Assembly (NCBI GenBank): GCA_002269645.1
Contig: NIVC01002865.1
Location: 1-64,000, forward strand
Direction: 5' to 3'
DNA: 64,000 nt
Source of the DNA: Macrostomum lignano
Lineage: Eukaryota
Of this stretch, positions 6,584 through 62,700 are shown piece by piece. The notes under the pieces were generated by a model. It made no database searches, was not told the origin of the DNA, and was given only the letters and a program-made list of their open reading frames with translations. Position 1 is the first letter of the stretch, and every line of letters starts with the position of its first letter. Position numbers and translations under genes: made by a program.

Positions 6584-6616
<33 letters not shown>

Positions 6617-6865: not shown

Positions 6866-9887
<3,022 letters not shown>

Positions 9888-15948: not shown

Positions 15949-16348
<400 letters not shown>

Positions 16349-23300: not shown

Positions 23301-26300
23301 TGTAACATCTACCAAATCTAGTGTAACATCTACCAAATCTATAGTGTAACATCTACCAAATCTATCGTGTAACATCTACCAAATCTATAGTGTAACATCT
23401 ACCAAATCTATAGTGTAACATCTACCAAATCTATAGTGTAACATCTACCAAACTATAACGTCTGATATAGCTACGCCTAGTTTAAATTCGAAGCGCATAA
23501 AATCCAGAATTACTTACACGTGAACTTCACAGCTCGAGGTGACAAGCCGAACGCCACATTCGTTCTTCATCATGTCGGCAATCTACGCTTCGGTTCAGCT
23601 TCTGTGCATCGGTTTTATCCGTAAAAAGCCAGAAGCCAGAAGTCAGTCTGGATCAGATCAACAAGCGGGTGAAGGCACCATGCTTATTGATGAGTCTGGA
23701 ACTGCTCAAGCTGCTCAAAAGCCTGACTCACCCATCCCAGCCTCCGAGGAAGCGCAAGAGGTGGCTGCTACGCAATGGACTCTGCAGTCGGCCGTGCAGT
23801 CGCTGCCCTTCTTTGTCATGGGATTAAGCATATTTTTCCTGACGCCCGCCAGCATTGTGCTGCCTTCGTTGGACAAGGTGCCGGATGTTGTTTACTGCTA
23901 AGGGTAGCTAGTGAATTTTCACCCACTCAAACCCGACACTCGCAAAACCACTCAGTCACACTTCAAACCTTTACTAAGTCACACTCCAAACCTTTATTAA
24001 GTCACACTCCAAACCTTTAGTAAGTCACACTCCAAACCTTCATTAAGTCACACTCCAAACCTTTATTAAGTCACACTCCAAACCTTTATTAAGTCACACT
24101 CCAAACCATCATTAAGTCCCACTCCAAACCATTATTAAGCAACACTCCAAACCATTATTAAGTCACACTCCAAACCATCATTAAGTCCCACTCCAAACCA
24201 TCATTAAGTCACACTCCAAACCATTGTTAAATCCCACTCCAAAGCATCATTAAGTCACACTCCAAACCATCATTAAGTCCCACTCCAAACCATTGTTAAA
24301 TCCCACTCCAAAGCATCATTAAGTCACACTCCAAACCATCATTAAGTCCCACTCCAAACCATCATTAAGTCACACTCCAAACCATCATTAAGTCACACTC
24401 CAAACCATCATTAAGTCACACTCCAAACCATCATCAAGTCACACTCCAAACCATCATTAAGTCACACTCCAAACCATCATTAAGTCACACTCCAAACCAT
24501 CATTAAGTCACACTCCAAACCATCATTAAGTCACACTCCAAACCATCATCAAGTCACACTCCAAACCATTGTTAAGTCACACTCCAAACCATTTAACGCA
24601 CTCCTACTGCGCAGGCTTACGGGGAGACGTTTATCTCGAACGACATGCTGCTGTCAGTCATGGCCGGAATCGGTGGAGCTTTCAACGCGTTCGGCCGATT
24701 GGTGGCTGGCATTGTGATTGACCGGCTGCACTTCCGCGTGAGAGCTGCGTTCCGTGCGGCTTTCTTTGCCAAAGTTTTTTATGCCAAAACCCCCAAATCA
24801 ACAACCCCCCAAATCAACAACCACCAAGCCAACAACCCCCCAAATCAACAACCACCAAACCAACAATCCCCCAAATCAACAACCCCCTCAAACCAACAAC
24901 CCCCCTCAGACCAACAACCCCCCTCAGACCAACAACCCCCCTCAGACCAACAACCCCCCTCAGACCAACAACTCCCCTCAGACCAACAACTCCCCTCAGA
25001 CCAACAACTCCCCTCAGACCAACAACTCCCCTCAGACCAACAACCCCTCTCAGACCAACAACCCCTCTCAGACCAACAACCCCCAAACCAACAACGCTGA
25101 AAACGACAGACAGAAAAGCTAAAGGCTTCAGACGCAACAATATTTAACAAACTGTTGCAGGTCTGCGTCCTAATTCAAGGCCTCCTTTTAGCAGCCCTGC
25201 ACGCATTGACCCCACTGTCAGCGCTGACGCACCCTGCGCTCTACTTTATCCTCGTCTGCTCAGTGAATTTTGTATTCGCCGGAGTGTTCGTGTTCTTCCC
25301 CTACTCGGTTGAGAAGTTGTACGGCAGCGCGCTGTTTGCCCAAGTCTACGGCCTGGTCTTCCTGTTTAAGGCGGTGGCCGGAGCTCTGATTGCCGCAGTG
25401 ACCACAGCCGGCCTCGGGGCGCTCGGCTGGACTGGCATTCTGGTGCTGACTGCCGTCACCTCCGGCATTGGTGGGTGGATTGACGACTGGCAGTGGTAGA
25501 TTGTAGATTGTAGATTGTAGATTGTAGATTGTAGATTGTAGATTGTAGGTTGTTGTTTTACGTAGATTGTAGACTGTAGATTGTAGATTGTAGATAGTAA
25601 ATTGTAGATTGTAGATTGTAGATTGTAGATTGTAGATTGTGTATTGTGTATTGTAGATTGTAGATTGTAGTTTTACGTAGATTGTAGACTGTAGATTGTA
25701 GATTGTAGATAGTAAATTGTAGATTGTAGATTGTAGATTGTAGATTGTAGATTGTGTATTGTGTATTGTAGATTGTAGATTGTAGATTGTAGATTGTAGA
25801 CTGTAGATTGTAGATTGTAGATAGTAAATTGTAGATTGTAGATTGTAGATTGTAAATTGTAAATTGTAGATTGTAGATTGTAGATTGTAGATTGTAGATT
25901 GTAGATAGTAAATTGTAGATTGTAGATTGTAGATTGTAGATTGTAGATTGTGTATTGTGTATTGTAGATTGTAGATTGTAGTTTTACGTAGATTGTAGAC
26001 TGTAGATTGTAGATTGTAGATAGTAAATTGTAGATTGTAGATTGTAGATTGTAGATTGTAGATTGTGTATTGTGTATTGTAGATTGTAGATTGTAGATTG
26101 TAGATTGTAGACTGTAGATTGTAGATTGTAAATTGTAAATTGTAGATTGTAGATTGTAGATTGTAGATTGTAGATTGTAGATAGTAAATTGTAGATTGTA
26201 GATTGTAGATTGTAGATTGTAGATTGTGTATTGTGTATTGTAGATTGTAGATTGTAGTTTTACGTAGATTGTAGACTGTAGATTGTAGATTGTAGATAGT

Positions 26301-27612: not shown

Positions 27613-29376
27613 ATGCATTCCTCAACTGCCGCACTGCTTGTGGTCGCTTCTGTTCTGGTGATATTTCCTGTCGTTGCTGGTTCCGCTGAACTCGAGAGAG
27701 TCGAAGGAGGTGAGTTAACTGATAGAGAAAGTCAGTGAGGGTCAGTGAGACCCAGTAGTAAGAGTCAGAGACAGTCAGAGAGAGTCAGAAAGTCAGAGAC
27801 AGTCAGAGACAGTCAGAGAGAGTCAGGGAGAGTCAGAAAGTCAGAGAGAGTCAGAGAGAGTCAGAGACAGTCAGAGAGAGTCAGAGAGAGTCAGAAAGAG
27901 TCAGAGAGAGTCAGAGAGAGTCAGAGACAGTCAGAGACAGTGAGAGAGAGTCAGGGACAGTCAGAGACAGTCAGAGAGAGTCAGAGAGAGTCAGAGAGAG
28001 TCAGAAAGTCAGAGACAGTCAGAGACAGTCAGAGAGAGTCAGAAAGTCAGAGAGAGTCAGAGAGAGTCAGAGACAGTCAGAGAGAGTCAGAGAGAGTCAG
28101 AAAGAGTCAGAGAGAGTCAGAGAGAGTCAGAGACAGTCAGAGACAGTGAGAGAGAGTCAGGGACAGTCAGAGACAGTCAGAGAGAGTCAGAGAGAGTCAG
28201 AGAGAGTCAGAAAGTCAGAGACAGTCAGAGAGAGTCAGGGAGAGTCAGGGAGAGTCAGAAAGTCAGAGACAGTCAGAGAGAGTCAGGGAGAGTCAGAAAG
28301 TCAGAGAGAGTCAGAGAGAGTCAGAGAGAGTCAGAGACAGTCAGAGAGAGTCAGAGAGAGTCAGAGAGAGTCAGAGAGAGTCAGAGAGAGTCAGAGACAG
28401 TCAGAGAGAGTCAGCGAGAGTCAGAAAGTCAGAGACAGTCAGAGACAGTCAGAGAGAGTCAGAGAGAGTCAGAGAGAGTCAGAAAGAGTCAGAGAGAGTC
28501 AGAGACAGTCAAAGACAGTCAGAGACAGTGAGAGAGAGTCAGGGACAGTCAGAGACAGTGAGAGAGAGTCAGAGACAACCAAAGACAGTCAGAGACAGTC
28601 AGACAGAAGGGCAGAGCAGACATTACTGGCATTCCCTGGCTACAAAAATTACAGTTAAAAGCAATTTTTCAACCAAAATTTCCCAAAAAACTGAAGCTCA
28701 AACTGAAGCAAAAACTGAAGAACTGCTGATCTCCATGACCGACTTCCTGGTCGAGTCCGCCTCGCTTCCGGCGAGCACTCGCGCCAAGCTGCTGCTGATG
28801 AAGGTGCTGCTGAAGCTGAGGATGAGCAGCACCAATGCTTTTCAAAATATGCTCACTGCTGGTGAGTTAAGAACCGACTACTTCAGTACTCGATTCTGAT
28901 TTAATAATAACTGTAAATCTACTTTATAACCCGGTTCTCAGGCACATTTAAACTTTGAGCACCCACCCCCAGCACCCACCCCAGCACCCACCCCCAGCAC
29001 CCACCCCAGCACCCACCCCCAGCACCCACCCCTCTAGCACCTACCCCTCTAGCACCCACCCCCAGCACCCACCCCTCTAGCACCTACCCCTCTAGCACCC
29101 ACCCCTCTAGCACCCACCCCCAGCACCCACCCCTCCAGCACCCACCCCTCTAGCACCCACCCCTCTAGCACCCACCCCAGCACCCACCCCTCTAGCACCC
29201 AACCCCAGCACCCACCCCCAGCACCCACCCCAGCTCCACAAAATCTGCAAGCTCATTAGAATATCATTGCACTTTGCACTCCCACAGATCACCCTGTCGC
29301 AGAAACCCTAGCTGTCGGAGGCCAGTCCGGAAAATTCAACAATAACAACGAAATTCTAAAAGGCGACGGGTTCTAG
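27613..29376 (+). CDS. Putative small secreted protein, 3 exons, 108 aa, unknown family
   Basis: Exons are 27613-27709, 28721-28861 and 29288-29376. Both donors are GTGAGT, both introns are phase 1, and the total of 327 nt is in frame. The N-terminus MHSSTAALLVVASVLVIFPVVAGSA looks like a signal peptide. There are no Cys residues. Confidence 0.6.
27745..28612. repeat. (GAGAGTCAGA)-type 8-10-bp array, intronic
   Basis: Direct reading. Confidence 0.95.
28962..29233. repeat. 13-15-bp C-rich minisatellite (CAGCACCCACCCC)
   Basis: Direct reading. Confidence 0.93.
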
Positions 29377-30481: not shown

Positions 30482-33400
30482 TCACTGACGTGGCTTGGCA
30501 TTTGGATTAATGGTGGCGTCAACTCCTAGCGTGGACAGAAAGCTTCTCTCGGGTTCTTTCGCCTTCTCGGCCTCGTAGTTTCGAATATCTTTCAGGTGCT
30601 CCGCCAGCGCTGAGCGGGCAACTTTGTAGCCAGGCCTGAGGTCCAGGAAGTTGAACAGCATATCGTCTAACGGGTCCTCGTCTTCGATCTCTTCTGCGTC
30701 CACTTCAACCTGGGGTTGAAAGTGAAATATGTTTACTTCGTTGTGCTATCGGAATTATAGTTGCGGTACAGCAACTTGAAGGTTTGGGCTAACTCCGAAC
30801 TATCTGCTTTTTTATCTGCATTTAATAAATCAAATTAGTATTAATAGAATAATAAATCAATTTTCAGAAATAATTGATTACACCTTCCTCAATGTGCAAC
30901 CGACAGCTCAGCCGCAGCTATTGCGCGGAGCATCTGAAGGCTGCGTACGGCTGTTCAGTCCAAGAACTGGGGGGTCGCCACACACCCTCAGTTACCCCAG
31001 TGCAGCTAATGCTGGCACCCAGTTTACAGCTGAGTGAACTGAAGCAATGCAGAGTTAGTGTTGCTCAAGGATAAAAATTTTAGTAAGTGGGTCGGGAATC
31101 GAACCCCCGACCTTTCAGTCGTGAGTCCGACGCTCTGACCACTAAGCTACGAGTAGAAACGCCTTTCAACAGATTCCAACAATACGAAATGTTTATGGTT
31201 CTTGTGAAGCATTGTGTACTTTAGATAGCCTCTCACAAAAACAGAGGTCAACTCCCTTGGCACTTCATCACAGTTCTTTTAAAGTTTAATTTTTGTAACA
31301 TGCTGAAAATCATTTAGTTGAAATATCCTGCTAAAAATACTATACCTTGTGCTCATTTTCCAATAAAGCTACTGCCAGTTATGAACAATTTTATCAGTTT
31401 TAAACCTAGACGGGTTCCCTTGTCAAGTCAAATAGGTTCTTAAGGCACTTACATCGTCCATCTTGAGTCCGCAGTGCGGGCAGCTCTCCCTGAGCTTAAC
31501 CAATCCTTTTCTGTCTGTGTAGTGGGCGCACGGCGCGCAGATGCTGTTTTGGCACGAGTCGCAGACGGTGAAAAATTCGTTAAAATTTGGCATCGACAAA
31601 TTTCCCCGAATACCGCATCGAATACAGCGGACTGTCGGCAGATTAAACAGAGATCTTAACAAGTCCATCCAACTATTTAAGCCCTCCTTCACGTAAGTGT
31701 TGAATAGAAATGATAAGCTGCTGTCGTCTTGCTCGAATTGAGACATTTTTAAAAGATCGCGATTGGATGGTAACAGCTCCCTGTCTGCCTGGATTTGGCG
31801 GCGAAGCCTGCAAGCGGTGGGATGCGGGTGGCGGCGGAGCTAAGAGTGTGATTAGGGTGGTGGGTATGGGGTGGCGGCGGAGCTAAGAGTGTGATTAGGG
31901 TGGTGGGTATGGGGTGGTGGCGGAGCCGAGAGTGTTATTATGGTGGTGGGTATGGGGTGGCGGCGGAGCTAAGAGTGTGATTAGGGTGGTGGGTATGGGG
32001 TGGTGGCGGAGCCGAGAGTGTTATTATGGTGGTGGGTATGGGGTGGCGGCGGAGCTAAGAGTGTGATTGGGGTGGTGGGTATGAGGTGGTGGCGGAGCCG
32101 AGAGTGTTATTGGGGTGGTGGGTATGGGGTGGCGGCGGAGCTAAGAGTGTGATTAGGGTGGTGGGTATGGGGTGGTGGCGGAGCCGAGAGTGTTATTGGG
32201 GTGGTGGGTTTGGATGGGCGGCGGAGCTCAGAGAGTGTGATTGGGGTGGTGGGTATGGGGTGGCGGCGGAGCCGAGAGTGTTAATGGGGTGGTGGGTATG
32301 GGGTGGCGGCGGAGCCGAGAGTGTGATTGGGGTGGAGGGTATGAGGTGGTGGCGGAGCCGAGAGTGTTATTGGGGTGGTGGGTTTGGATGGGCGGCGGAG
32401 CTAAGAGTGTGATTGGGGTGGTGGGTATGGGGTGGCGGCGGAGCCGAGAGTGTTTTTGGGTTGGTGGGTTTGGGGTGGCGGCGGAGCCGAGAGCGTGATT
32501 GGGGTGGTGGGTATGGGGTGGTGGCGAGGCCAAGAGTGTGATTGGGGTGTGGTGGGTTTGGGGTGGCGGCGGAGCCGAAAGTGTGATTGGGGTGCTGGGT
32601 TCGGGGTGGTGGCAGAGCTGAGAGTGTGATTGGGGTGGTGGGTTTGGGGTGGTGGCAGAACTGAGAGCGTGATTGGGGTGGTGGCTTGGTATCCCTCCAG
32701 AGCAAACATACCAGACGGCTCGTTGAACAGCCCTCGCCGGTTCCAGTTCCAGCATGATATGATGCCTGAGCTTCAAGAAGAACGGGCCAAACAGGGTGAG
32801 CAGAGTGTAAAGTAGCATTAGGCCTCCAATCAGAGCATCGAGTGCCCAATTGGGTTTAGTGGCTTTGGGTGAACAGGCCAATACGTTGATATCTAGGTTG
32901 ATCTCTCTCAGCGCTTTCTGTGAGCAAAGTACGAGAGTAAAATGCTGGATCTCTTTGAATCCATAATTTTGGCTGCGGAGAGTAGGTTTGAGTGTGTTAT
33001 TAGAGACTCACCTGCATGTGAATTATAATTGTCAGCAGCAGAGCCATAGGACTGGTCTCAGCCAGATCCTTTGCAGCCTTCAGCGTAAGTCTAGTATCAA
33101 TATTTCTCTCAATTTTAATCGCTCGATTCCATTTCTGTTCCATGAAATAGGCCATTGAATAAAAGATCCACTCAAGACCCATCACCAGGATGAAGGGCAC
33201 CAGACGGATTATCGTTAGCAGCAGGTCGGAGCCACCTAGTCGGTGAACTACATCGCTGATCATGCTCTCGGCCAGAATTGACACTCGGGTTTTCTCGTAC
33301 GCGTCTAGCGGCAGAAGGGGAGGCTCCAGTTCCTCTAGCCTGGGGAGAGAGAAGAAGTATACAAGGTAGAGGTAGGCAAGGTAGAGGTAGGCAAGTTAGA

Positions 33401-36400
33401 GGTAGCCAAGGTAGAGGTAGGCAAGGTAGAGGTAGGCAAGGTAGAGGTAGGCAAGGTAGAGGTAGGCAAGGTAGAGGTAGGCAAGGTAGAGGTAGGCAAG
33501 GTAGAGGTAGGCAAGGTAGAGGTAGGCAAGGTAGAGGTAGGCAAGGTAGAGGTAGGCAAGGTAGAGGTAGGCAAGGTAGAGGTAGGCAAGGTAGAGGTAG
33601 GCAAGGTAGAGGTAGGCAAGGTAGAGGTAGGCAAGCTAGAGGTAGGCAAGGTAAGAGGTAGGCAAGGTAGAGGTAGAAGAGGTAGAAGAGGTAGAGGTAG
33701 GCAAGGTAGAGGTAGGCAAGGTAGAGGTAGAAGAGGTAGAGGTAGGCAAGGTAGAGGTAGGCAAGGTAGAGGTAGGCAAGGTAGAGGTAGGCAAGGTAGA
33801 GGTAGGCAAGGTAGAGGTAGGCAAGGTAGAGGTAGGCAAGGTAGAGGTAGGCAAGGTAGAGGTAGGCAAGGTAGAGGTAGGCAAGCTAGAGGTAGGCAAG
33901 GTAAGAGGTAGGCAAGGTAGAGGTAGAAGAGGTAGAAGAGGTAGAGGTAGGCAAGGTAGAGGTAGGCAAGGTAGAGGTAGGCAAGGTAGAGGTAGGCAAG
34001 GTAGAGGTAGGCAAGGTAGAGGTAGGCAAGGTAGAGGTAGGCAAGGTAGAGGTAGGCAAGGTAGAGGTAGGCAAGGTAGAGGTAGGCAAGGTAGAGGTAG
34101 GCAAGGTAGAGGTAGGCAAGGTAGAGGTAGGCAAGGTAGAGGTAGGCAAGGTAGAGGTAGGCAAGGTAGAGGTAGGCAAGGTAGAGGTAGGCAAGGTAGA
34201 GGTAGGCAAGGTAGAGGTAGGCAAGGTAGAGGTAGGCAAGGTAGAGGTAGGCAAGGTAGAGGTAGGCAAGGTAGAGGTAGGCAAGGTAGAGGTAGGCAAG
34301 CTAGAGGTAGGCAAGGTAAGAGGTAGGCAAGGTAGAGGTAGAAGAGGTAGAAGAGGTAGAGGTAGGCAAGGTAGAGGTAGGCAAGGTAGAGGTAGAAGAG
34401 GTAGAGGTAGGCAAGGTAGAGGTAGGCAAGGTAGAGGTAGGCAAGGTAGAGGTAGGCAAGGTAGAGGTAGGCAAGGTAGAGGTAGGCAAGGTAGAGGTAG
34501 GCAAGGTAGAGGTAGGCAAGGTAGAGGTAGGCAAGGTAGAGGTAGGCAAGCTAGAGGTAGGCAAGGTAAGAGGTAGGCAAGGTAGAGGTAGAAGAGGTAG
34601 AAGAGGTAGAGGTAGGCAAGGTAGAGGTAGGCAAGGTAGAGGTAGGCAAGGTAGAGGTAGGCAAGGTAGAGGTAGGCAAGGTAGAGGTAGGCAAGGTAGA
34701 GGTAGGCAAGGTAGAGGTAGGCAAGGTAGAGGTAGGCAAGGTAGAGGTAGGCAAGGTAGAGGTAGGCAAGCTAGAGGTAGGCAAGCTAGAGGTAGGCAAT
34801 GTAGAGGTAGGCAAGGTAGAGGTAGAAGAGGTAGAGGTAGGCAAGGTAGAGGTAGGCAAGGTAGAGGTAGGCAAGGTAGAGGTAGGCAAGGTAGAGGTAG
34901 GCAAGCTAGAGGTAGGCAAGCTAGAGGTAGGCAATGTAGAGGTAGGCAAGGTAGAGGTAGAAGAGGTAGAGGTAGGCAAGGTAGAGGTAGAAGAGGTAGA
35001 TGTAGGCAAGGTAGAGGGAGAAGAAGTGGAGAAGAGGTCTATAAATCTTCAGCAATGGCAAGAGAAATCAAGGGAGAGTGGATCGAATTCATAGAGAAAT
35101 CAAGGGAGAGTGGATCGAATTCATAGAGAAATCAAGGGAGAGTGGATCGAATTCATAGAGAAATCAAGGGAGAGTGGATTGAATTCATAGAGAAATCAAG
35201 GGAGAGTGGATCGAATTCATAGAGAAATCAAGGGAGAGTGGATCGAATTCATAGAGAAATCAAGGGAGAGTGGATCGAATTCATAGAGAAATCAAGGGAC
35301 CACAGAGGCGCCCGTGTGTTACCTAAGAAACGGAGCCGTGACGAAGTTGTTCTCAAACTCGGCAACCCGCATGTACTTTTTGTAGAATGAGATGGACAGC
35401 AGCAGGGTGATGGAGAACACAGCCAGGGACAGTACGGAGCACACAATCTTGACAATTCTGCTGGCATGGCGATAAGTTCTTTTCACTTCTTTCGCTTTCT
35501 GGCCAACTGCCATCTGCATTTGATGCCTCATCTCGGCTAGCTGATGCGAGAACCCGCCGGTCATGGACACCACCACCCTGGTATCTGGTCCGATGGCGTC
35601 CTTGATTAGCTCGCGGATGGCTTTGATGTCGTTGAGTCTAACTAAAACGTTCTTCTGCCACCACTCAGTTACGACTTTGAACTTGGCTAAAAATATGAAA
35701 GTAGATATTTTTGTAATCACTTCTTAAGCTAATCAGTACCGTAAAGACGCTCATATTTTTCAAAAGAGATATGTGCTCTTTGAGCTGTGAGTGGTGGAAT
35801 TTTTTCTCTGCTCTAGAGAAAGCATAACCGAATTTGACTCCACCAATCACAGCTCTAGAGACTCTAGAGACAGCATAACCGAATTTTGCTCCACCAATCA
35901 CAGCTTTAGAGACTCTAGAGACAGCATAACCGAATTTTGACTCCACCAATCACAGCTCTAGAGACAGCATAACCAAAGTTGACTCCACCAATCACAGCTC
36001 TAGAGACAGCACAACCGAATTCGACTCCACCAATCACAGCTCTAGAGACAGCATAACCAAAGTTGACTCCACCAATCACAGCTCTAGAGACTCTAGAGAC
36101 AGCATAACCGAATTTGACTCCACCAATCACAGCTCTAGAGACAGCATAACCGAATTTGATTCCACCAATCACAGCTCTAGAGACAGCATAACCGAATTTG
36201 ACTCCACCAATCACAGCTCTAGAGACTCTAGAGACAGCACAACCGAATTTGATTCCACCAATCACAGCTCCAGAGACAGCATAACCGAATTTTACTCCAC
36301 CAATCACAGCTCCAGAGACAGCATAACCGAATTTGACTCCACCAATCACAGCTCTAGAGACAGCATAACCGAATTTGACTCCACCAATCACAGCTCTAAA

Positions 36401-38456
36401 GACAGCATAACCGAAGTTGACTCCACCAATCACAGCTCTAGAGACAGCATAACCGAATTTGACTCCACCAATCACAGCTCCAGAGACAGCATAACCGAAT
36501 TTGACTCCACCAATCACAGCTCTAGAGACAGCATAACCCAATCACAGCTCTAGAGACAGCATAACCCAATCACAGCTCTAGAGACAGCACAACCGGATCT
36601 GACAGGTAAATGGTACACAGGAGTTGCAACTGTATGCAAGCAAACATAAACAAACCTTCAATGATGGCTCTAGCTTTGGCTAGCAGTGGACAGATTTTAC
36701 TCGTGCCAATATCGTGGATAAAGTAGCCAATAGTAGGCTTGGCTATCGGAGTAGTGCCCGTGATAGAGCGCACTAAATTCACCAGCGAGCTGACCATCTG
36801 CACTAAGCCACCAAGGACGCGATGCCGACGAAATCTTTTAGCCAGAACGCGAGTCAACCTGGCACAGGAGCCGTAAAAACTCACCCTTGGTCGCAATTTG
36901 CCTAACATTTTTCCTACTTTCTTTAAAAGTCGCCCCAAAGCTTTACCAAGCTTGTCCAAGGAAATGTAGATTGAGTGTACAATTCGATAGAATATTTCGG
37001 CCACCAGCTGCATAGCGGATATCAACAGACGGACCGGGATGAGAAACAGGCTAACCACGTTTTTGCCGTGAAGCGATTTGACCACGCTCACAATGTCGAA
37101 AAATTGCTCATGCAGACAAGACTGTGAAAGTTTGAAAAGTTTGAAAAGTACATTGAAGTAACAGTGCCTTTTAGCGATAGACACTGGCTCAGAATGTGCT
37201 TTTTCTCAACCCCAGTCTCCGATGCTTATCGCGTGTTTTGGCCCAATCTCCACCCCTCATTTATTCACCCCCAGTCCCCGATGCTTATCGCGTGTTTTGG
37301 CCCCAACCCCCACCCCTCATTTATTCACCCCCAGTCCCCGATGCTTATCGCGTGTTTTGGCCCAACCCCCACCCCTCATTTATTCACCCCCAGTCCCCGA
37401 TGCTTATCACGTGTTTTGGCCCCAACCCCCACCCCTCATTTATTCACCCCCAGTCCCCGATGCTTATCACGTGTTTTGGCCCCAACCCCCACCCCTCATT
37501 TATTTACTCCAGTCCCCGATGCTTGTCGCGTATTTCGGCCCAACCCCATCCCTCATTTATTCACTCCAGTCCCCGATGCTTATCGCGTATATGCCTAAAA
37601 CTACACCACCGCAATAAAATTACGAATTGAGCTTAAATGCATACTTTTGAGGCAGAAATGGAGTCCATGTTGCTTCTCAGATTGGTTGCCGGACCGGAAG
37701 CGAGCAAAACCAGACAGCCAATTAGCAGCGCGTTGCGCAGGGCCCCCCTAGCCATGGACGGAATCATCAGAAAGGTGACGGCTCTGGTTGCTGACGAGTA
37801 GGAAAGCAGCAGAGTTAGCACGGTACTAATTATGCAGGTGACAATCACGCGAACCCGCAGGTCAAGGTCCATGAGGTAGGTGGCCATGAGGTAGAAGACC
37901 AAGCTAAGGACTAATGAAGCGATTAAGCTGCGAATGGTGTCTTTCGCCTTCTCCCAGCTCTATAAAGGGGTGCAATTACAAGTATTGTTTTCTTTCTGAC
38001 AGTCAGTATCAGTGTTGCAGTGTCGCAGTGGCCCAGTGTCTCACGATCAGTGTCTCAGCGTCTCAGTGTCTCAATGTCTCAGTGTCCCAGTTGTCCCAGT
38101 GTCCAAGTGTCTCAGTATCTCAGTGTCGACTAAGAGTCTTGGTTTCCGAATATCTGACTTACATAGCAGTGTCTGCCATAAAAAACCCAATACAAGAATA
38201 GCGCACTAACCTTGTACTCGAAGAAGTCAAAGTAGAATATCTCCACCTCCTTCATGTACAGTCCTTCAAGTGTGAGCTCGTTAAGCGGTTTCACCCCGGA
38301 ACGCAGCATCTTCGCCCAGTGCATGAAGTTTAGAATAGCCGTATAGCAGGCCACAAATAGTTTAATTATGGCTACCAGAGGCGATGAAGTGGCCCGTTTA
38401 TTCTCCAGCATCTGCCTGCCCGTCTTGTGCAGTCCAGGCCTGTTCATGGACTGCAT
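30482..38456 (-). CDS. DCST1/DCST2: DC-STAMP domain protein (DCST1/DCST2; spe-42/sneaky-like), 8 exons, about 857 aa
   Basis: Exons: 38456-38211, 37959-37645, 37187-36656, 35686-35323, 33339-33012, 32917-32712, 31807-31453 and 30709-30482, with consistent phases. Motifs: L..SGP..N, Y...EFENNFVT..F, LLPL...EK, C.P....P, F.LKLRH.I and a C-terminal 8-Cys RING-like domain. The start codon and the exon 3 acceptor are less certain, and the paralog is not resolved. Confidence 0.85.
31087..31156 (-). pseudogene. tRNA-like sequence (tRNA pseudogene or SINE head; CAC in loop position)
   Basis: A-box TAGCTTAGTGG and B-box GGTTCGATTCCC are present, but the acceptor and anticodon stems pair poorly. It lies in DCST intron 7. 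Confidence 0.7.
31828..32690. repeat. 43-45-bp G-rich minisatellite, about 20 copies
   Basis: Direct reading; DCST intron 6. Confidence 0.95.
33360..35020. repeat. 15-bp (GGTAGAGGTAGGCAA)n array with higher-order blocks
   Basis: Direct reading; DCST intron 4. Confidence 0.97.
35062..35298. repeat. 32-bp minisatellite, about 7 copies (GAGAAATCAAGGGAGAGTGGATCGAATTCATA)
   Basis: Direct reading. Confidence 0.95.
35810..36595. repeat. 42-bp minisatellite, about 18 copies
   Basis: Direct reading; DCST intron 3. Confidence 0.95.
37210..37590. repeat. 59-60-bp minisatellite, about 6 copies
   Basis: Direct reading; DCST intron 2. Confidence 0.93.
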
Positions 38457-49600: not shown

Positions 49601-51570
49601 GGTTGACAGATTTTTTAAGATTGCAAGGCTTATGGGGCATTGCTAAGATGTCAAGGGGGTTGATATGCTAAGGCTTGTGGGGGGATTTTCTGACATGTCA
49701 AGGCTTACAAGGTATAATGCAAAGAGACGCTTACATGTAGTTTATTAAAAAAACTTGTACTGCATTTTTTTGGCTCCCCAACGGGGGGCGCTGATTGCTA
49801 GTGATAGGCCTATCTATGACCAAAAGCTCAGAGTCAGACTATGTCTACATTGCTAGGAGCCAATCTGTGCCCAACACTAGGCTGCCTATCAATAATAATG
49901 GCCATAATTGGCTTTGGCTACAATTAGGAAGCCAAAAAGCCAAGAGGCCTAGAAGGGTGCAAATGCAAAGGTATAGGCCTATATGATATAGGCCATAGTC
50001 TAGATCATGGCAAGCCTATGCCAAAAAGAAAATTCAAGTTTTTTTTAATTTTAGGCCCCTATATCAATGTAAAGTAAAAAAATATTTCGTAAATCCAAAG
50101 GTTGTTTATGCATCAATTTTTTCAAAGAATATATATTTTTTAGAAATGTAAATAAGATTTTTATTAAACGCTAAATGGCTAAAAGCCTATTCTTTGGTAA
50201 AAAGTGATATTTTTTATTTTTTATTTATTTTTTAAATTTCATTAATATTTTCTACTTTAGTTTCCAATTATTTTTAAAAAGCTTTTGTTGGTTGATATTG
50301 AACTATAGGATTAATAGGATTACATTAGCCCTAAGTTGGCTATTTTTTGTATGCCAACTATGTACAGTTCAAATATATGCCTAACATCAAAATTCTATCC
50401 CTGCATTTCAATAGGTACAACCCCTATTGGAATGAGTTTCAAAAACCCGCGGACACGCGACATGGGTGCCAAAATTGTGCCTTCAAAAGCGCGATGCGAC
50501 TCCAAATTTTGTTGTCTGGGAGGTGGCGATGCGCGACGCAACACTGATGTCTATTGAACAAATGACCGGGGGGAGGACACCACAGCAGCCACGTTGTAAT
50601 TGACAATTCCCATTCTGCTGTTCACTCTCGACACCAAGACCATGGGGCAACAGACAAGAGTATTCCTTTCAACTTTGCGGAAATAGAAATGAAATTTAAA
50701 AAGAATAAACAGTAAAACAACAAAGGTTACAACACTTAGAAAAACAGCGCACACATTGTAACTAACAAGTAACATTTCTAAAAATTATATTTGAAGTATT
50801 AGTTATTATACTTATAAGTATTATATGTATTATATTTATAATAATTAGTTATTATACTATATTAATAGAAAACTATTAATATTGTTGAAATATTAAAAAA
50901 ACATATACTAAAAAAGAAACCTTAAAAAGTTATCAATGCATTTTTTTTAGAAAAAAAGCAACTGTTTTATCTAATAAATAAACTATAGCTTGATTAATAA
51001 TGATCTAAGTTATAATTACTAAATAGTAATAAAAACTTTTTTCATATTAAATAAATCAAGTATTATATTGGTAAAGAGAATAGTAGATTTAAATTAAACA
51101 AAATTAAACTGTTTCAGAGGCAGATATTATCATTTTTAAGTCTATGGCTATTATATTTTATTTTTCTGATATATTCTTATAATATCAAAGCTGTTATAAT
51201 CTATACAATCAAAATTCAGTTCTTTTTTAGCTTTATCTTTAATGCATTAAATAGAAAATATCTTTGTTCTTTTGTTAAGTTTCAAGGCAAAAGCTAGAAG
51301 TAATGAGTAATAATAGTAATTTATATATTCTTTTTGCATAAATTTTGAAGCAAATGGCTAGGTGAATTCATAGGTTGCACCCAAGCATGTTTCGTTGGAA
51401 AAGTATTCTTTCTTTCTAGTTTATATTTGCTTTTAATCTATGTAATTGCATTAAAAAGTTTTTTTTGCAAAAAAACTTTTTTATTTAACTTTGCCTCTTG
51501 TATGCATATTGGTTAAGTATTGGGACACTAGGACAAATGCATTTTTACATTTGCATTTATCATACATGTG

Positions 51571-51671
51571 CAACCTTGGGATTCACTTGGCCATTTCTAT
51601 TGGCAACACACACATGTAAGTTGCTATTGGCTGAGAGCAGTCATGTGACTACTATTCTGTCCAATAGCAAC

Positions 51672-51732
<61 letters not shown>

Positions 51733-51765
51733 CAATAGAAATGGCCAGGTGAATCCCTAGGTTGT
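51571..51765. repeat. Foldback element with (TG)n expanded in one arm
   Basis: Arms 51571-51630 and 51661-51765 are reverse complements apart from (CA)3-4 versus (TG)~26. Confidence 0.85.
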
Positions 51766-52081: not shown

Positions 52082-54027
52082 ATGGTCAAGGGAGACAAGC
52101 GCAAGTGGAAGGAGGGCTTCTTCGATAAGCTGACTACCCTATTGAATGAGTACTCCAAGGCTTTCATTGTTAGCGTGGACAATGTCGGCTCCAAACAGAT
52201 GCAGCAGATCCGACAGTCGATGAGAAACGAAGCGGTGATCCTTATTGGCAAGAACACCATGATAAGGAAAGTGGTCCGAGCCATGCTAGACGATCATCCC
52301 ACTCTGGAGAAGCTGCTGCCTCACGTCCGACTCAATGTTGGCTTCGTGTTCACCAACTTGGATCTGAACGATGTGCGCACAAAGATCGAAGCTAACCAGG
52401 TTGCCGCCCCGGCCAGGGCCGGCTCCATCGCCCCCTGCGATGTAGTTGTGCCAGCTCAGAATACCGGCCTGGGACCGGAGAAGACCAGCTTCTTTCAGGC
52501 CTTGAACATCCAGACTAAGATTACTCGCGGCACTATTGAAATCTTGTCTGACGTGCCGCTGATTAAAAAGAATACAAAGGTAATTTTTTTATTGATTGAT
52601 GCCCTCGCAAAAATGCCCTTACCTACTTACTCTTTTTACAGTAGTAAAATTGGCGTTTTTTGTTGTAAGCTGCACCTCAATCTCAGTTTGTTTGCATACG
52701 CGAGACCCTTGCCAGGCCGATAAAAATTTTGGTTTTCCTCTTGCCCTCTTGTGTCTGACTTTGACCTCTCCTTACTGCTCTCTCATTGGCTGAGCTAGAT
52801 TGGGCCTGCCCCTAGGCTGAGTTTCGTCCGTCTGACTTTGCACTCTCTCCTTACTGCTCTCTCATTGGCTGAGCTAGATTGGGCCTGTCCCCTAGGCTGA
52901 GTTTCGTCCGTCTGACTTTGCACTCTCTCCTTACTGCTCTCTCATTTGCTGAGCTAGATTGGGCCTGCGGCCCTGCCCCTAGGCTGAGTTTCGTCCGTCT
53001 GACTGCACTCTTTACTGCTCTCTCATTGGCTGAGCTAGATTGGGCCTGCGGCCCTGCCCCTAGGCTGAGTTTCGTCCGTCTGACTGCACTCTTTACTGCT
53101 CTCTCATTGGCTGAGCTAGATTGGGCCTGCGGCCCTGCCCCTAGGCTGAGTTTCGTCCGTCTGACTGCACTCTTTACTGCTCTCTCATTGGCTGAGCTAG
53201 ATTGGGCCTGCGGCCCTGCCCCTAGGCTGAGTTTCGTCCGTCTGACTTTGCACTTCCCTCCTGCTGGGCAGAGACGCCAAAAATGGACTTTTTGTAATTC
53301 CTGGCAGTCTCAATCAGCAGGAGGCAGATTAATTAACCAATGCGGAATTTAATCACCGATTTATTTTCTGTTAATTTTGAGTTAATCGGTTTCATGCTTC
53401 CGCAACATTCGAAATTGGCAAATTCTGCTGCAGATATTGTATAAATCAAATTCATGGAAAAAAACTTATTTTATGCTAGCTTACTTGATAATAACGCTAA
53501 CGCTAAGTATGCTAATAACTTTGTTGCATTAGTTTACATACTTTAAATTATAAACCTTACGATATGTACTTTATTAGGTCGGCCAGTCTGAAGCCACCCT
53601 GCTGAACATGCTGAAGATCTCGCCGTTCTCTTACGGCCTGAGGATCCGTCAGGTGTACGACAACGGCAGCGTGTTCGGTCCGCAGGTGCTTGACATCCGC
53701 GACGAGGACATTGTGGCCAGATTCTTGGCCGGCAGCCGCCGAATCGCTGCCCTGTCCCTGCAGCTGGGCACGCCAACTCTGGCTTCCGCTCCGCATTCGA
53801 TTGTCAACGCGTTCAAGCGTTGCCTAGCGGTTGCCGTGGAAACTGACTACGATTTCCCGCTAGCCGATAAGGTCAAGGAGTACATTAAAAATCCTGACAA
53901 GTTTGCTGCGGCTGCCCCGGCTGCTGCCGCCGCCGCCCCAGCCGCTGCCGCCGCTAAGAAAGAAGAAAAGAAGGAGGAAAGCTCCGAGGAGTCCGACGAC
54001 GATATGGGAATGTCGCTGTTCGATTAA
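52082..54027 (+). CDS. RPLP0: 60S acidic ribosomal protein P0 (uL10), 2 coding exons, 315 aa
   Basis: Exons are 52082-52579 and 53578-54027 (phase 0, GT-AG). Motifs: [47 protein letters not shown] and the [13 protein letters not shown] tail. AATAAA is at 54258. Confidence 0.98.
52750..53255. repeat. ~75-84-bp minisatellite, 6-7 copies, in the RPLP0 intron
   Basis: Direct reading. Confidence 0.93.
53256..53410 (+). ncRNA. Box H/ACA snoRNA, copy 1 (intronic in RPLP0); predicted dual guide for LSU rRNA
   Basis: Hairpin, then H box AGATTA (53326), hairpin, then ACA (53405) plus 3 nt. Both pockets are 14 nt from their boxes. They are complementary to the conserved LSU sequences UGAUU-UC-UGCCCAG and GCAUGAA-UG-GAUUAA. 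Confidence 0.9.
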
Positions 54028-54561
54028 CTCTAAAAGCCAGGAATTCCACGCCAAACTGATGGATTTGTTTGCTCTGGGTTGGAACTTTTACTAAAAACTG
54101 GTATCGTTGCTGTCTTCTAGTGTCTGTTTTTGGGTGCCGCGGGCCTGTGCGCCAGCTCACACTGCAGCCCGGGGGGGCGGGTCCGCTGTGGCACTCTGGC
54201 TGATTGATTGATGCCTGAGTAAAATGTTGCTTAAGAAGGAAATGATCACATAACAACAATAAAAAAGATTAAGCGTTGGCTTGCCGACTTTTGTGGTCAA
54301 AAAGTTTTTTGTGGATTGAAAAAGTATAGTCGCGCGTGTTGTCTTGCACTGATTTTATTTTTAACTGCTTGTTAGGTTAAATTTGTCATTTAGATGCTTA
54401 GTAAGTTAGTTGTTTAGTCTTCTAGTAGTTGTTTAGTTAGTTAGCTAGCTAGTCAGTCAGTTAGTTAGCTAGTTAGTCAGCCAGTTAGTTATTTAGTTAG
54501 TTAGTCAGTTTATTCGACACAGCGCTAAACAATAAGAATTGTTTTTAATAGGCTTAACTTT

Positions 54562-54715
54562 GCCTCCTGCTGGGCAGAGACGCCAAAATGGATTTTCTGT
54601 AGTTCCTGGCAGTCCCAATCAGCAGGAGGCAGATTAATTAACCAATGCGGAATTTAATCACCGATTTATTTTCTGTTAATTTTGAGTTAATCGGTTTCAT
54701 GCTTCCATAACATCC
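54562..54715 (+). ncRNA. Box H/ACA snoRNA paralog, copy 2 (slightly degenerate 3' stem)
   Basis: Near-identical to copy 1, with H box at 54631 and ACA at 54710. TTCCATA replaces TTCCGCA. Confidence 0.8.
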
Positions 54716-54902
54716 TAGTTTTTTTTTAAATTAAAAACAAGTTCACGAGACATCCTTAAGTAAAGCTCTTTAAGGGCTCTCAGGTGAACTATAGTCCATT
54801 TAGCCCACTGTACTGTCAAAAATGTTGCCCATCAATATTATAATCTGTAGTTAGTTTGAGACTTCTACAAAGACTAGTCAGTCGGTATAAAACCAGGCAG
54901 CC

Positions 54903-55063
54903 GCCTCCTGCTGGGCAGAGACGCCAAAATGAACTTTCTGTAATTCCTGGCAGCCTCAATCAGCAGGAGGCAGATCAACCTAACTTTAATCGCGGAATTT
55001 AATCACCGATTTATCTTCTGTTAATTGTTGTGAGTTAATCGGTTTCATGCTTCCGCAACAGTG
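54903..55063 (+). ncRNA. Box H/ACA snoRNA paralog, copy 3
   Basis: H box AGATCA at 54972 and ACA at 55058; the guide sequences are intact. Confidence 0.85.
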
Positions 55064-55100
55064 TTGGCGCCCACTAAATATATGCGGTAGAGAATGCAGC

Positions 55101-55635
55101 ACGAGAAGTATTGGTTTTGTCAGCCTAACTGAGAATAAAGCCATCCAAAGTGAGAATCCTTCTGAGCCATGCTAGTCCTGAGCCATATGACTAGCCAATA
55201 GCTTGAACGGAATAACGGAAACAGGAACACACTGGATGATACAGTACAGTAAAGTAAAGAGTTAAAATAGCCGTCCCTCAATGCACTGCCCAAAGAGTCG
55301 TCTGCAATGCAGGTCCCACGCGGCAGCCTTCCCAGCAGTGACTGTGTCGTCAATCGCTTCGCGCGCCTCCCTCTCTAACAGCATGTTCCTGTTTCCGTTA
55401 TTCCGTTCAAGCTATTGGCTAGTCATATGGCTCAGAAGGTATAAAAATAAAAGAATACGACGCATAGACCAATCGATTCTCACATTGGATGGCTTTTTAT
55501 CACTTTGCTTGTCCTTTATAGTCTATGGCCCATAGACTAAGGCTGCACGCAGCCAGGCCCTTCGCAGTCAGCGTAGGCAGGATTCTCACTTTGGATGGCT
55601 TTATTCTCAGTTAGGCTGACAAAAGCAATACTCGT
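55101..55635. repeat. Large imperfect inverted repeat / foldback between snoRNA copies 3 and 4
   Basis: 55101-55160 is the reverse complement of about 55578-55635. About 55170-55232 is the reverse complement of about 55383-55440. Confidence 0.85.
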
Positions 55636-55932
55636 ATTTTATGCAACCAGCTATCTATGGCCAAAACTGCCTGATAGTTAAGCCAAGCAAGTTAGAGACA
55701 GAGAGAGAGAGAGGGAGAAAGAGATCGCTGCAAGGCGCGAGTATCCTTCGTGCAGATGTCTATGGCCGAATTATCAACTTGGTTTCCTTTGTCTATGAAC
55801 AAGACCAAATCTATACTGCTGCTAAATGGGAATTCTCAACGTCTTCCCATCTTGGCAAGCAAAAGAGATATAAACGCACACCTTTGCTAAAACTAAAGCG
55901 AAAACAATTATTGCTGGTATCTTTAAAATTTT

Positions 55933-56083
55933 CCTCCTGCTGGGCAGAGACGCCAAAGGAACTTTTTGTGTTATCTCTGGCAGCCTCAGTCAGCAGGAGG
56001 CAGATTAACTAACCAATGTGGAATTTAATCACCGATTTATCTCTTCAAAGTGAGTTAATCGGTTTCATACGTCCACAACATTG
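55933..56083 (+). ncRNA. Box H/ACA snoRNA paralog, copy 4
   Basis: H box AGATTA at 56002 and ACA at 56078. There is a compensatory stem change, TGTGGA/TCCACA versus TGCGGA/TCCGCA. Confidence 0.82.
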
Positions 56084-56164
56084 TTTTTTTAAGCGTAGTT
56101 ATTATCAATTATTAATTTAGTATGATAATGGTGCTATCGATAAACGAATTGTGTTAATGTATTC

Positions 56165-56785
56165 ATGCAACTAAATCGCTCTTCGACATTCTCGAAGGTC
56201 GCGGTCGCTCTGGCAGCATTTGCCAATCGCCGCAATGGCCACTTTGCAAGGTCCTCTTCTTGCAACTATAGTTTTGGCAAGCGCACCCTCTGTGTAATGG
56301 CTTTAATCAACAATAATACTAATAACAACGCCAATTGTAGTAGTAGTAGCGGCAATAGTTCAGACAAAACCAACGACAAGAAGTTAGGACAGCGCACAAA
56401 TGCCGAATGGAAAGCGCTGCTACCTTTAGACGTTTACCTTGTGACCCGTTGCGGCGATACGGAGCCACCTTATAGCGGCCTGTACACTGACTTCTTTGCT
56501 CCGGGTGTCTACCTGTGCGCCTGCTGCAACGAAGCGCTGTTCTCGTCCGACGCAAAGTTCTCGTCCGCCTGCGGTTGGCCGGCGTTCTTTGACTGTCGCG
56601 ATAGTTCGGTAAAGCGCAAAGCCGACTCAAGTCACGGTATGCAGCGTGTCGAGGTGTTGTGCGCCAATTGCGACGCCCATCTTGGTCACGTGTTCCCGGA
56701 TGGGCCGCCGCCAACTGGGGAACGTTATTGTATTAATAGTCTGGCGTTGGAGTTCCAGCCCGCCAAGAAGCCGGATGCTAGTTGA
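56165..56785 (+). CDS. msrB: Methionine-R-sulfoxide reductase (Cys-type, Zn-binding), intronless, 206 aa
   Basis: Motifs: TEPPYSG, G.YLCACC, LF.SDAKF.SACGWPAF, RVEVLCANCDAHLGHVF.DGP.PTGERYCINS. Confidence 0.96.
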   Translation: MQLNRSSTFSKVAVALAAFANRRNGHFARSSSCNYSFGKRTLCVMALINNNTNNNANCSSSSGNSSDKTNDKKLGQRTNAEWKALLPLDVYLVTRCGDTEPPYSGLYTDFFAPGVYLCACCNEALFSSDAKFSSACGWPAFFDCRDSSVKRKADSSHGMQRVEVLCANCDAHLGHVFPDGPPPTGERYCINSLALEFQPAKKPDAS

Positions 56786-59761: not shown

Positions 59762-62700
59762 ATGGAATCTTCAGTAGGCGGCGCTCATTCGGACGCAGAT
59801 TTTCGCAGTCTGTTTAGCATTCCATTGTCCTCGTTGTTCAACTTTCAAAGAAATAATCAGCCACAGCAGGAGGCCCAGCAGCAGCCGCCGCCACAGCCGC
59901 CTGTGCCTCTGATTCCGATGAATGGATTTGACGCGAATTATTTGCACGCACTAAACGATGAGCAGCAGTTACAGTTGCATCAAGATGAAGCTTGGCAATC
60001 TCGGCATCATCACTCGCTTAGTAGGCAGCATCATAGCGTCAGGCATCAACGTCATGCCGCCAACAATGCCCCGTTGAATTATTTCACTAGCCAATCGTCA
60101 GCTGATAGTGCGCATTATTCTGGGTGAGTAGTTCACTCGGTTCTGCTGCCTGCTGGTACTGCGCTTTTCTTGGACAGCTGCAGTTGAAGGATGTGTTCTC
60201 ATGTTTGATAAGAATGTGCTTTCAATCCTTATGTTGAATGGGATTATGTGTCTTAGATTTCTCATATCAATAGGGTTAGATATGTTTTTATGTACTTCCA
60301 ACATAGGGTATGTTCTCATTTTGACACATGCTCTCACATGGAACGTACTAGAAGATCATGTTCTCATGATGGTAGGTTATGTTCATCATACTGGTATGGT
60401 ACTGTAGGTTCTTATGTCACATGTACATATAGTAGGATATGTTCTCCAATTCTTATGCTAGTAAGTTTTGCATAAAATCTACCGAAACCTTCAGCAACGA
60501 AGAGGAGCAGAGCGGCTCTCCACTAATTAAACGGGACGTGAGCACTCCAATTAACCTGTGAGTCTCAATTCAATTGTTGATCTATTATGACCGATTATTC
60601 TGTAAACTTTCCCGACAGTAAACATGCTGCACAATCTCTTTTTTATAATCGAATTTAGCATGGAGTTCGGATTCGAACCCTCGGAGATGGAGATCGACTC
60701 AGAAGAGATGTCCCTGCCTGCCAGTGTGCTCATGTGAGTAGGCTAGATGCTCAAGCAGCGGTCACTGGGAATCTTGGGTAGGCGATTAGGGATGCAGTGA
60801 GTATCAGTGAGCCACTTTGAACAGCCGCTTTTATCAGCGAGTTCTGGCGATTCCCTGATCGCGATTCCTTGATAGGCGATTCCTTGATGGCGATTCCCGG
60901 ATGGCGATTCCCTGATGGCGATTCCTTGATGGCGATTCCCTGATGGCGATTCCCTGATGGCGATTCCCGGATGGCGATTCCCTGATGGCGACTCCCGGAT
61001 GGCGATTCCCTGATGGCGATTCCCGGATGGCGATTCCCTGATGGCGACTCCCGGATGGCGATTCCCTGATGGCGATTCCCTGATGGCGATTCCCTGATGG
61101 CGATTCCTTGATGAGCGATTCCTTGATAGGCGATTCCTTAATGGGCGATTCCTTGACCGCGATTCCTTGATTGGCGATTCCTTAATGGGCGATTTCTTAA
61201 TGGGCGATTCCTTAATCGGAGAGTTCTTGATGGCGACTCCTGCAAGTGTATTTGTAAAATGCAATCACTAGTTTACACATTGCCAGCTATCAAACTGTCT
61301 GTTATAAATCTCCAATTTCTCGCCTGGAAATTTCTCGCCCGCAAAGAAGCGGCCGACCGAACCACAGCGAAGTGGAGAAGCTGCGCCGGGACCGCATGAA
61401 CTCCAGCATCAACGCGATGGCTCGCCTCGTGCCCGCGTGCCGATCGGCCAGCAGGAAGCTGGACAAACTCACGGTGCTGCGCCTGGCCGCCCAGCACATC
61501 AAACTGCTGCGGGCGAGGTCCAGCTCCCTGATGCACACCCCGGCGGATCTGTTCAGCGGCGAGGAGCTGCAGCTGCTGCTGTCGGATGTGAGTCAGCTCA
61601 GTCTCAGAGATTGGGAAATGGAAAACTGGTTGATTGACCAGGCCAATCCGCCCACTGCCTTGTGGACTCCTGAGGGCACCTTGGCACAGACACTGAGACA
61701 GACACTGAGACAGACACTGAGACAGACACTGAGACAGACACTGAGACAGACACTGAGACAGACACTGAGACAGACACCAAGGCAGACACTGAGACAGACA
61801 CTGAGACAGACACTGAGACAGACACTGAGACAGACACTGAGGCAGACACTGAGACAGACACTGAGACAGACACTGAGACAGACACTAAGACAGACACTAA
61901 GACAGACACTGAGGCAGACACCAAGGCAGACACTGAGACAGACACCAAGACAGACACTGAGACAGACACTGAGACAGACACTGAGACAGACACTGAGACA
62001 GACACTGAGACAGACACTGAGACAGACACTGAGACAGACACTGAGGCAGACACCAAGGCAGACACTGAGACAGACACTGAGACAGACACTGAGACAGACA
62101 GACACTGAGACAGACACCAAAACAGACACTAAGGCAGAGACACTGAGGCAACACTGAGACATACATTAATACAGGCAATAGAAATCGCCCCCCCCCCTAT
62201 ACAGCAAAAGTCAACCTGACCCCTCCATTGTTTCGCAGAAGTCCTCCCTGCAAGGCTTCCTACTGGTAGTCGAGTGCGACAGAGGCAGAATACTCGGCGC
62301 CGCTAACTGCAGCAATAACGGAATTCTCGGCGCCACCGTCAACTCGGTAGGTTTTTCGACTCTCTCCTATATATTCAATTAAATTGCTTGAAAGACAGTA
62401 TATCACGTGACTACAGCCAGTCGCCTACCACCTTCCAACGCTTTCGCTGTCCAATAAATAAGCTTCAATCATGTCACGTGACTTAGCCAGTCGCCCACCT
62501 CCCTCCAACGCTTTCGCTGTCCAATAAATAAGCTTCAATCATGTCACGTGACTTAGCCAGTCGCCCACCTCCCTCCAACGCTTTCGCTGTCCAATAAATA
62601 AGCTTCAATCATGTCACGTGACTTAGCCAGTCGCCCACCTCCCTCCAACGCTTTCGCTGTCCAATAAATAAGCTTCAATCATGTCACGTGACTTAGCCAG

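Follow-up and report, generated by a model that had tools for sequence, protein, structure and literature searches.

A predicted double-guide box H/ACA snoRNA in the RPLP0 intron of Macrostomum lignano, a probable orthologue of vertebrate SNORA48

The window analyzed here, 64,000 nucleotides (nt) of the flatworm Macrostomum lignano (contig NIVC01002865.1 of assembly GCA_002269645.1, positions 1 to 64,000 of the forward strand), contains a gene for ribosomal protein P0 (uL10, RPLP0). Within the sole intron of that gene we found an element that is very likely a box H/ACA small nucleolar RNA (snoRNA) guiding pseudouridylation: a predicted double guide, with a ribosomal RNA (rRNA) target for each of its two pockets, and a probable orthologue of vertebrate SNORA48. 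This RNA, which we call copy A (53257-53410, plus strand), is fully canonical in sequence, fold, and rRNA complementarity and scores 189.7 bits with R1, a covariance model that we built from the 13 flatworm copies only and whose E values are rough, coming from a shortened calibration. The RNA is a known kind of guide and not a new kind of system. It adds to a model organism for regeneration a well-supported H/ACA guide family that Rfam misses, with 13 copies at three homeologous loci; among the titles of the full-text papers mentioning Macrostomum and snoRNA that we searched, no snoRNA catalogue was apparent.

Anatomy and rRNA targets of copy A

RNAs of the H/ACA class carry an H box (ANANNA), an ACA box located 3 nt before the 3' end, and pockets whose tops lie 14-16 nt upstream of a box. 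Copy A has the fold, the H and ACA boxes, a 14-nt spacing, and bipartite rRNA complementarity around an unpaired U-N. It is organized as hairpin-hinge-hairpin-tail, with a minimum-free-energy fold of -53.8 kcal/mol (z = -5.4) that was matched or undercut by 0 of 200 shuffled sequences. The 5' hairpin begins with an 8-bp lower stem, P1 (CCUCCUGC at 53257-53264 with GCAGGAGG at 53317-53324), above which the arms of the 5' pocket, UGGGCA (53265-53270) and AAUCA (53312-53316), lead to the upper stem P2 (GAGACGCC/GGCAGUCUC, 53271-53278 with 53303-53311, one A bulged). The H box, AGAUUA (53326-53331), is preceded by one C and followed by an A/U-rich hinge. In the 3' hairpin, the 6-bp lower stem P3 (GCGGAA at 53342-53347 with UUCCGC at 53398-53403) supports the 3' pocket, with arms UUUAAUC (53348-53354) and UUCAUGC (53391-53397), and the upper stem P4 (ACCGAUU/AAUCGGU, 53355-53361 with 53384-53390). 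The ACA box (53405-53407) is preceded by an A and followed by 3 nt to the RNA end.

We scanned the small-subunit (SSU), 5.8S, and large-subunit (LSU) rRNAs of L010 and the LSU rRNA of L037 in H/ACA geometry, finding a single strong match per pocket, of 12 and 13 bp, all Watson-Crick and with zero G-U pairs. The 5' pocket matches AUGUGAUU[U]CUGCCCAGU (5+7 bp) and the 3' pocket matches CGCAUGAA[U]GGAUUAACG (7+6 bp). Composition-matched random pockets reached at least 12 bp in 1 of 3000 cases and at least 13 bp in 0 of 3000; the rRNA complementarity of both pockets is confirmed to lie far beyond chance. The 5' pocket also has a weak second match at SSU position 369 of L010 (UUCAAAUU[U]CUGCCCUAU, 3+5 bp), which arises because 18S rRNA holds a UUUCUGCCC string resembling the LSU target; we rejected this site as a target, its 3+5 bp being too short.

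In the L037 LSU rRNA, the target uridines are positions 2187 and 2310, each 4 lower than its yeast counterpart (2191 and 2314). The 5' target is equivalent to yeast pseudouridine (Psi) 2191 and human Psi3674, and the 3' target to yeast Psi2314 and human Psi(m)3797; both lie in LSU domain IV. Pseudouridine is known at both positions in yeast and human (PMC5699541, PMC6182160), and the human fragments AUUPsiCUG and CCCmAG (Psi3674) and GAAPsimGGAPsi (Psi(m)3797) agree with the target context (PMC6182160). We also searched metagenomic contigs with the pattern TGATTTCTGCCCAG-N(95-125)-GCATGAATGGATTAA, observing both target strings together in at least 120 contigs, with a gap of 107 nt in nearly all; the two of these contigs that we tested are both full eukaryotic LSU rRNA genes (LSU_rRNA_eukarya).

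An original prediction, made from the letters of the window, had placed an H/ACA snoRNA with two guide pockets here, directed at the equivalents of yeast Psi2191 and Psi2314. Every element that it listed is present at 53257-53410, and the unique 12- and 13-bp matches in eukaryotic LSU rRNA bear out its targets. It had stated that yeast uses separate RNAs for these sites, which agrees with the published assignment of Psi2191 to snR32 and Psi2314 to snR86 (PMC5699541), and that the second site corresponds to human 3797 and SNORA48, which agrees with the assignment of human 28S-3797 to SNORA48/ACA48 (PMC6466398). Its pocket-to-box distance of 14 nt is exact in both pockets when counted from the first nucleotide of the 3' arm. 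The 5' arm it had named, CUGGGCA, is correct as a sequence; as a free arm it is 6 nt long, the C forming the top pair of the lower stem. The prediction had covered copy A only, missing the host gene and three downstream copies.

Our proposed mechanism takes H/ACA ribonucleoprotein processing and action as generally known. Copy A would be transcribed within the RPLP0 pre-mRNA intron and, after splicing, trimmed by exonucleases to the region protected by dyskerin/Cbf5, Nop10, Nhp2, and Gar1. In the nucleolus, the 5' pocket would pair with LSU 5'-UGAUU-[U]C-UGCCCA-3' and the 3' pocket with LSU 5'-GCAUGAA-[U]G-GAUUAA-3', and dyskerin would isomerize the bracketed uridine, left unpaired at the base of the upper stem 14 nt from the H or ACA box, to pseudouridine. 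This model of expression, processing, protein binding, and modification predicts two pseudouridines in domain IV of M. lignano LSU rRNA, and if the targets hold, M. lignano 28S rRNA is expected to contain UGAUUUCUGCCCA and GCAUGAAUGGAUUAA.

Paralogous copies and their constraint

Three further copies lie on the same strand as copy A, between the P0 stop codon and the gene for methionine sulfoxide reductase B (MsrB/SelR). Copy B (54563-54715, plus strand) has intact pockets and a broken 3' lower stem (GCGGAA/UUCCAU); it is the sole copy whose minimum-free-energy fold loses the 3' hairpin, 12 of the 13 folding canonically, and it is probably a defective pseudogene. Copy C (54904-55063, plus strand) also has intact pockets, with an H box of AGAUCA and one A.C mismatch in the 5' upper stem. 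In copy D (55933-56083, plus strand), the 3' arm of the 5' pocket is AGUCA, which keeps target pairing via G.U, and that of the 3' pocket is UUCAUAC, which places one A.C mismatch against the target; its 3' lower stem carries a compensatory change from C-G to U-A. Nine further copies, for 13 in total, occur at two homeologous M. lignano loci (L122 and L123) with the same P0-cluster-SelR layout, among them L122_B2, whose pocket variant CUGGGUA keeps target pairing via G.U. An R1 search of 134 kb recovered exactly the 13 copies, at 168-195 bits, all on the sense strand beside P0.

M. lignano has two groups of P0 genes, Mlig000285 and Mlig003545, whose proteins are 93% identical. The arrangement of a snoRNA in the intron and a downstream cluster is found in the Mlig003545 group only, at three loci. 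Genes for SelR and a bHLH-PAS protein neighbor the Mlig003545 group, and DCTN5 and SAPS neighbor the Mlig000285 locus.

The pattern of constraint across the copies follows the H/ACA elements. In an alignment of all 13, P1 and the ACA box have no variable columns (0%); the share of such columns is 7% in P4 and in the 3' pocket, 12% in P2, 14% in the H box, and 18% in the 5' pocket, and it rises to 58% and 60% in the apical loops, 86% in the hinge, and 100% in the flanks. P3 is 33% variable and holds the single compensatory pair (U-A x6, C-G x4, and one U.G intermediate). The boxes are essentially invariant, the pocket-to-box segments are free of insertions and deletions (indels) in every copy, and 96% of cells are paired across the 13 copies, versus 24-51% when the partners are slid. 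Between paralogues, the flanks are unalignable, while the RNA body is conserved up to both ends. Between homeologues, snoRNA bodies and flanks are both about 95-97% identical, with large indels confined to the spacers; bodies and flanks being equally similar and differing only in indels, the homeologue comparison cannot show selection on substitutions.

An alternative that we consider possible, if rather unlikely, is that only one pocket is active, or that only the intronic copy A is expressed and copies B-D are decaying duplicates with no host transcript. The disrupted 3' lower stem and misfolding of copy B and the A.C mismatch of copy D to its 3' target would fit such decay, as would an A.C mismatch in the 5' upper stem of 7 of the 12 distinct sequences and the spacer between P0 and MsrB (54028-56167), which holds no annotated gene in the locus record of this contig (L124). 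The pockets and boxes of copies B, C, and D are, however, almost invariant next to flanks that no longer align, and the C and D copies have no indels at any of the three homeologous loci, whose surrounding spacers carry large ones. If copies B-D act as guides alongside copy A, they could be transcribed from a noncoding host, as read-through transcripts, or as part of a P0-MsrB polycistron.

Relation to SNORA48 and other guide families

The original prediction had suggested that the combination of these two guides may be lineage-specific and had proposed a search of Rfam for it. The suggestion is not supported, and Rfam largely speaks against it: the consensus of SNORA48 (RF00554, clan CL00037) carries both pockets, in the same order as in the flatworm RNA, and the same is true of the rhinoceros, shark, and bird copies described below. 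In the consensus, the 5' pocket is cUggGUA/AUAucAg and the 3' arm of the 3' pocket is UucaUgC, compared with CUGGGCA/AAUCAG and UUCAUGC in the flatworm; the 5' hairpins align as cUggGUAgAG...UCUcAUAucAgc for SNORA48 and CUGGGCAGAG...UCUCA-AUCAGC for the flatworm. Both are two-hairpin H/ACA RNAs whose 5' pocket combines a 5' arm of CUGGG(C/U)A with a 3' arm that has AUC(A) as its core, and both occur as several paralogous copies per locus. The function of the SNORA48 3' hairpin, at the 28S-3797 equivalent, is matched by the flatworm arms UUAAUC/UUCAUGC, which pair with GCAUGAA[U]GGAUUAA. The two RNAs have apical loops and lower stems of unrelated sequence, and their hosts differ, SNORA48 lying in an EIF4A1 intron and the flatworm copies in the RPLP0 intron and the RPLP0-MsrB spacer.

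To compare the two RNAs in greater depth, we examined four vertebrate eIF4A loci, from a rhinoceros (L125), a catshark (L126), a teleost (L127), and a bird (L128). Rhinoceros EIF4A1 contains two SNORA48 copies, scoring 145.8 and 86.6 bits with Rfam (L125:3075-3209 and 3959-4103). The catshark eIF4A gene contains two SNORA48-like copies (L126:2194-2331 and 1230-1363), one at 39.1 bits with Rfam (E 1.2e-4), and bird EIF4A1, beside SENP3, contains one (L128:4955-5090) at 38.9 bits; these shark and bird scores are, like that of the flatworm RNA, under the SNORA48 gathering score of 50. We found no SNORA48-like RNA at the teleost eIF4A1 locus. R1, although built from flatworm sequences, matched rhinoceros copy b at 27.1 bits (E about 1e-5), the shark at 23.1 bits (about 1e-4), and the bird at 20.0 bits (about 6e-4), and it alone detected the second catshark copy (13.4 bits, E 0.04); these scores are dominated by pockets and boxes, and the E values are rough. 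Rhinoceros copy a, the stronger Rfam match, was not among the R1 matches listed. In these searches of 24-29 kb, R1 matched the SNORA48 loci specifically and little else.

Hairpin 1 of the rhinoceros, shark, and bird copies contains (C/A)UGGG(C/U)A together with AAUC or AUCA, and their hairpin 2 contains UUCAUC/UUCAUGC. The A or C by which the 3' pockets differ (UUAAUC versus UUCAUC) tracks the rRNA (GAUUAA versus human GAUGAA). The catshark eIF4A gene also holds a SNORA81-like H/ACA RNA (L126:4168-4343), at 41 bits versus a gathering score of 45. In human, SNORA81 lies in EIF4A2 and SNORA48 in EIF4A1; the shark gene may bring together snoRNA sets that mammals keep apart.

We conclude that the flatworm RNA is a predicted functional equivalent of SNORA48, yet lies outside the family by the Rfam score criterion, and that in its sequence, its architecture, and its guides it is probably a highly diverged relative and orthologue. 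Several observations weigh against this assignment and against the guide function itself. No Rfam family reached its gathering threshold anywhere in the window, and at E <= 10, searches with 7 kb, 186 nt, 166 nt, and 85 nt returned weak H/ACA matches only: snoR137 at 25.6 bits, DdR18 at 14.6 bits, and SNORA48 at 12.2 bits. This last score, obtained for copy A in the 166-nt search with E = 2.6, is far from the gathering score of the RF00554 model. The complementarity was computed on the rRNA of eukaryotes other than M. lignano (L010 and L037). Pattern searching, blastn, a regular expression, and a covariance model all came back without a copy at the other P0 paralogue locus (L001, NIVC01000882.1, Mlig000285). 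Because the paralogues are closely related, covariation is thin: a single pair shows changes on both sides, and 16 of 500 shuffles reach an equally high score. Finally, the isolated fold of copy A partly closes the 5' pocket with three extra pairs, which follows from the self-complementarity of the target; the same zipping is seen in the Rfam SNORA48 consensus structure.

Convergence offers another explanation, which we regard as improbable: the flatworm RNA would be a functional double guide independent of SNORA48, its pockets made alike by conserved rRNA and their pairing a flatworm or lophotrochozoan invention. The low SNORA48 score, the different hosts (RPLP0 versus EIF4A1), and the dominance of pockets and boxes in the cross-species scores would all fit that case, and in fungi the transfer of guide elements between hairpins and between families is well documented (PMC5824354). 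Convergence does not readily account for the same two pockets occurring in the same order on one RNA in flatworm, shark, bird, and mammal, or for the specificity with which the flatworm model selects SNORA48 loci. It also leaves two likenesses outside the pockets. The first P2 pairs beside the 5' pocket are GAG/CUC in both the flatworm RNA and mammalian SNORA48, and the 9-nt hinge motif UAACUAACC is identical in the majority of flatworm copies and in shark copy 1; the hinge being under no target constraint, this motif argues for common descent. Common descent of the flatworm RNA and SNORA48 would make the guide pairing old rather than flatworm-specific, the two guides having probably been linked since before the protostome-deuterostome split, while yeast divides them between snR32 and snR86. 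For the study of guide-target co-evolution, the contribution is modest.

The comparison also bears on the 5' hairpin of vertebrate SNORA48. In the rhinoceros, shark, and bird RNAs, the 5' pocket is complementary to both flanks of human 28S-Psi3674, with arms CUGGG(C/U)A and A-N-AUC(A), and a single additional nucleotide separates the AAUC/AUCA segment from the upper stem, with a box distance of 16 nt versus 14 nt in the flatworm. Human Psi3674 is about 99% modified (PMC6182160), and a 2012 table gives its guide as "unknown" (PMC3542256). In the main texts of the literature that we searched, we found no guide for this site, and the SNORA48 5' pocket is not annotated as one there. The canonical flatworm pocket makes the vertebrate 5' hairpin readable as a Psi3674-type guide, and together with the conservation of a near-canonical pocket from shark to mammal it makes this hairpin a candidate guide for Psi3674, an assignment that newer databases may already contain. 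We tentatively suggest, as a proposal that may well prove wrong, that the flatworm RNA keeps an ancestral bilaterian double guide in canonical form and that the SNORA48 5' hairpin is a guide, or the relic of one, for human Psi3674. If so, the extra nucleotide of the vertebrate pocket would be a departure from canonical geometry that is tolerated and has been kept from shark to mammal.

Among other guide families, a parallel to the 3' hairpin is offered by DdR18 (RF01568), a Dictyostelium H/ACA RNA whose 3' hairpin has the consensus arms UUaAUC/UUCAugC, 14 nt from the ACA box as in the flatworm; its score of 14.6 bits compares with a gathering score of 80, and we saw no resemblance in its 5' half. 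Saccharomyces cerevisiae snR86, the guide for 25S-Psi2314, shares the target uridine of the flatworm 3' pocket (PMC5699541). It is about 1 kb long (PMC5824354) and, unlike the flatworm double guide, is not reported as a guide for Psi2191. The target uridine of the 5' pocket is shared with snR32, the guide for 25S-Psi2191, which is a separate RNA in yeast; its listed functional homologues are Entamoeba ACA-Eh-LSU2268 and T. brucei TB10Cs3H2. Neither the snR86 nor the snR32 family matched the flatworm RNA in Rfam at E <= 10 in searches down to 85-186 nt, and the target sites alone are common to them. We rejected snoR137 as the family of this RNA despite its 25.6 bits: its pockets differ, and the match reflects general H/ACA shape.

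The reading that the element is not a snoRNA at all, and is instead a dispersed repeat or foldback element with two chance hairpins, could appeal to the repeat-rich region (an 81-bp array upstream and an inverted repeat resembling a miniature inverted-repeat transposable element, or MITE, between copies C and D), yet is effectively refuted by the H/ACA boxes and 14-nt spacing, two perfect and independent matches to sites known to be pseudouridylated, the distribution of constraint, the restriction of the copies to the sense strand beside P0 with none elsewhere in 134 kb, and the relatedness to SNORA48.

Host gene and genomic setting

Introns of ribosomal protein genes are a typical location of snoRNAs. 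The P0 gene called in the L124 record spans 52082-54027 on the plus strand, with exon 1 (52082-52579) supported by the spliced translation and exon 2 (53578-54027, including the stop codon) by its open reading frame (ORF) and the spliced translation. The intron that hosts copy A (52580-53577, plus strand) is of the GT...AG type; its junction was placed from the sequence and confirmed by the translated product. The spliced product of 315 amino acids matches M. lignano PAA54747.1 (Mlig003545g3) at 100% identity and contains the Pfam families Ribosomal_L10, RL10P_insert, and Ribosomal_60s. Copy A ends 168 nt before the 3' splice site. The cluster of copies is closed by the MsrB/SelR gene (56168-56785, plus strand), identified by its ORF and recorded as L124 gene 14087-14704 with PF01641.

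The 81-bp tandem array (52768-53247) is not part of the RNA and ends 9 nt 5' of copy A. Tandem Repeats Finder (TRF) reports for it a period of 81 with 4.4 copies at 97% matches; the array spans about 6 units at 90-97% matches, and the copy number varies among the three homeologous loci. It is related to an array downstream of the other P0 paralogue (L001:17405-17712, minus strand), where it is inverted.

Between copies C and D lies the nested inverted repeat mentioned above, MITE- or foldback-like (55107-55632), with outer arms of 54 nt that are 98% complementary and inner arms of 57 nt that are 96% complementary. It is apparently absent from L122 and L123, which show about 550-580 gap columns there.

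Upstream of the P0 gene, positions 51560-51760 hold a (TG)26 microsatellite fused to a nearly perfect palindrome (GGCCAUUUCUAUUGGCAACACACACAUGUAAGUUGCUAUUGG...), a combination that gives spurious weak Rfam matches to families of microRNAs (miRNAs) and scaRNAs (small RNAs specific to Cajal bodies), such as mir-3149 at 40.8 bits versus a gathering score of 100. Long low-complexity tandem repeats are unusually abundant in the window (4100-6900, 15900-16350, 18000-19900, 24700-25100, 27700-28700, 32200-37600, and 60700-62200) and yield long spurious ORFs on both strands.

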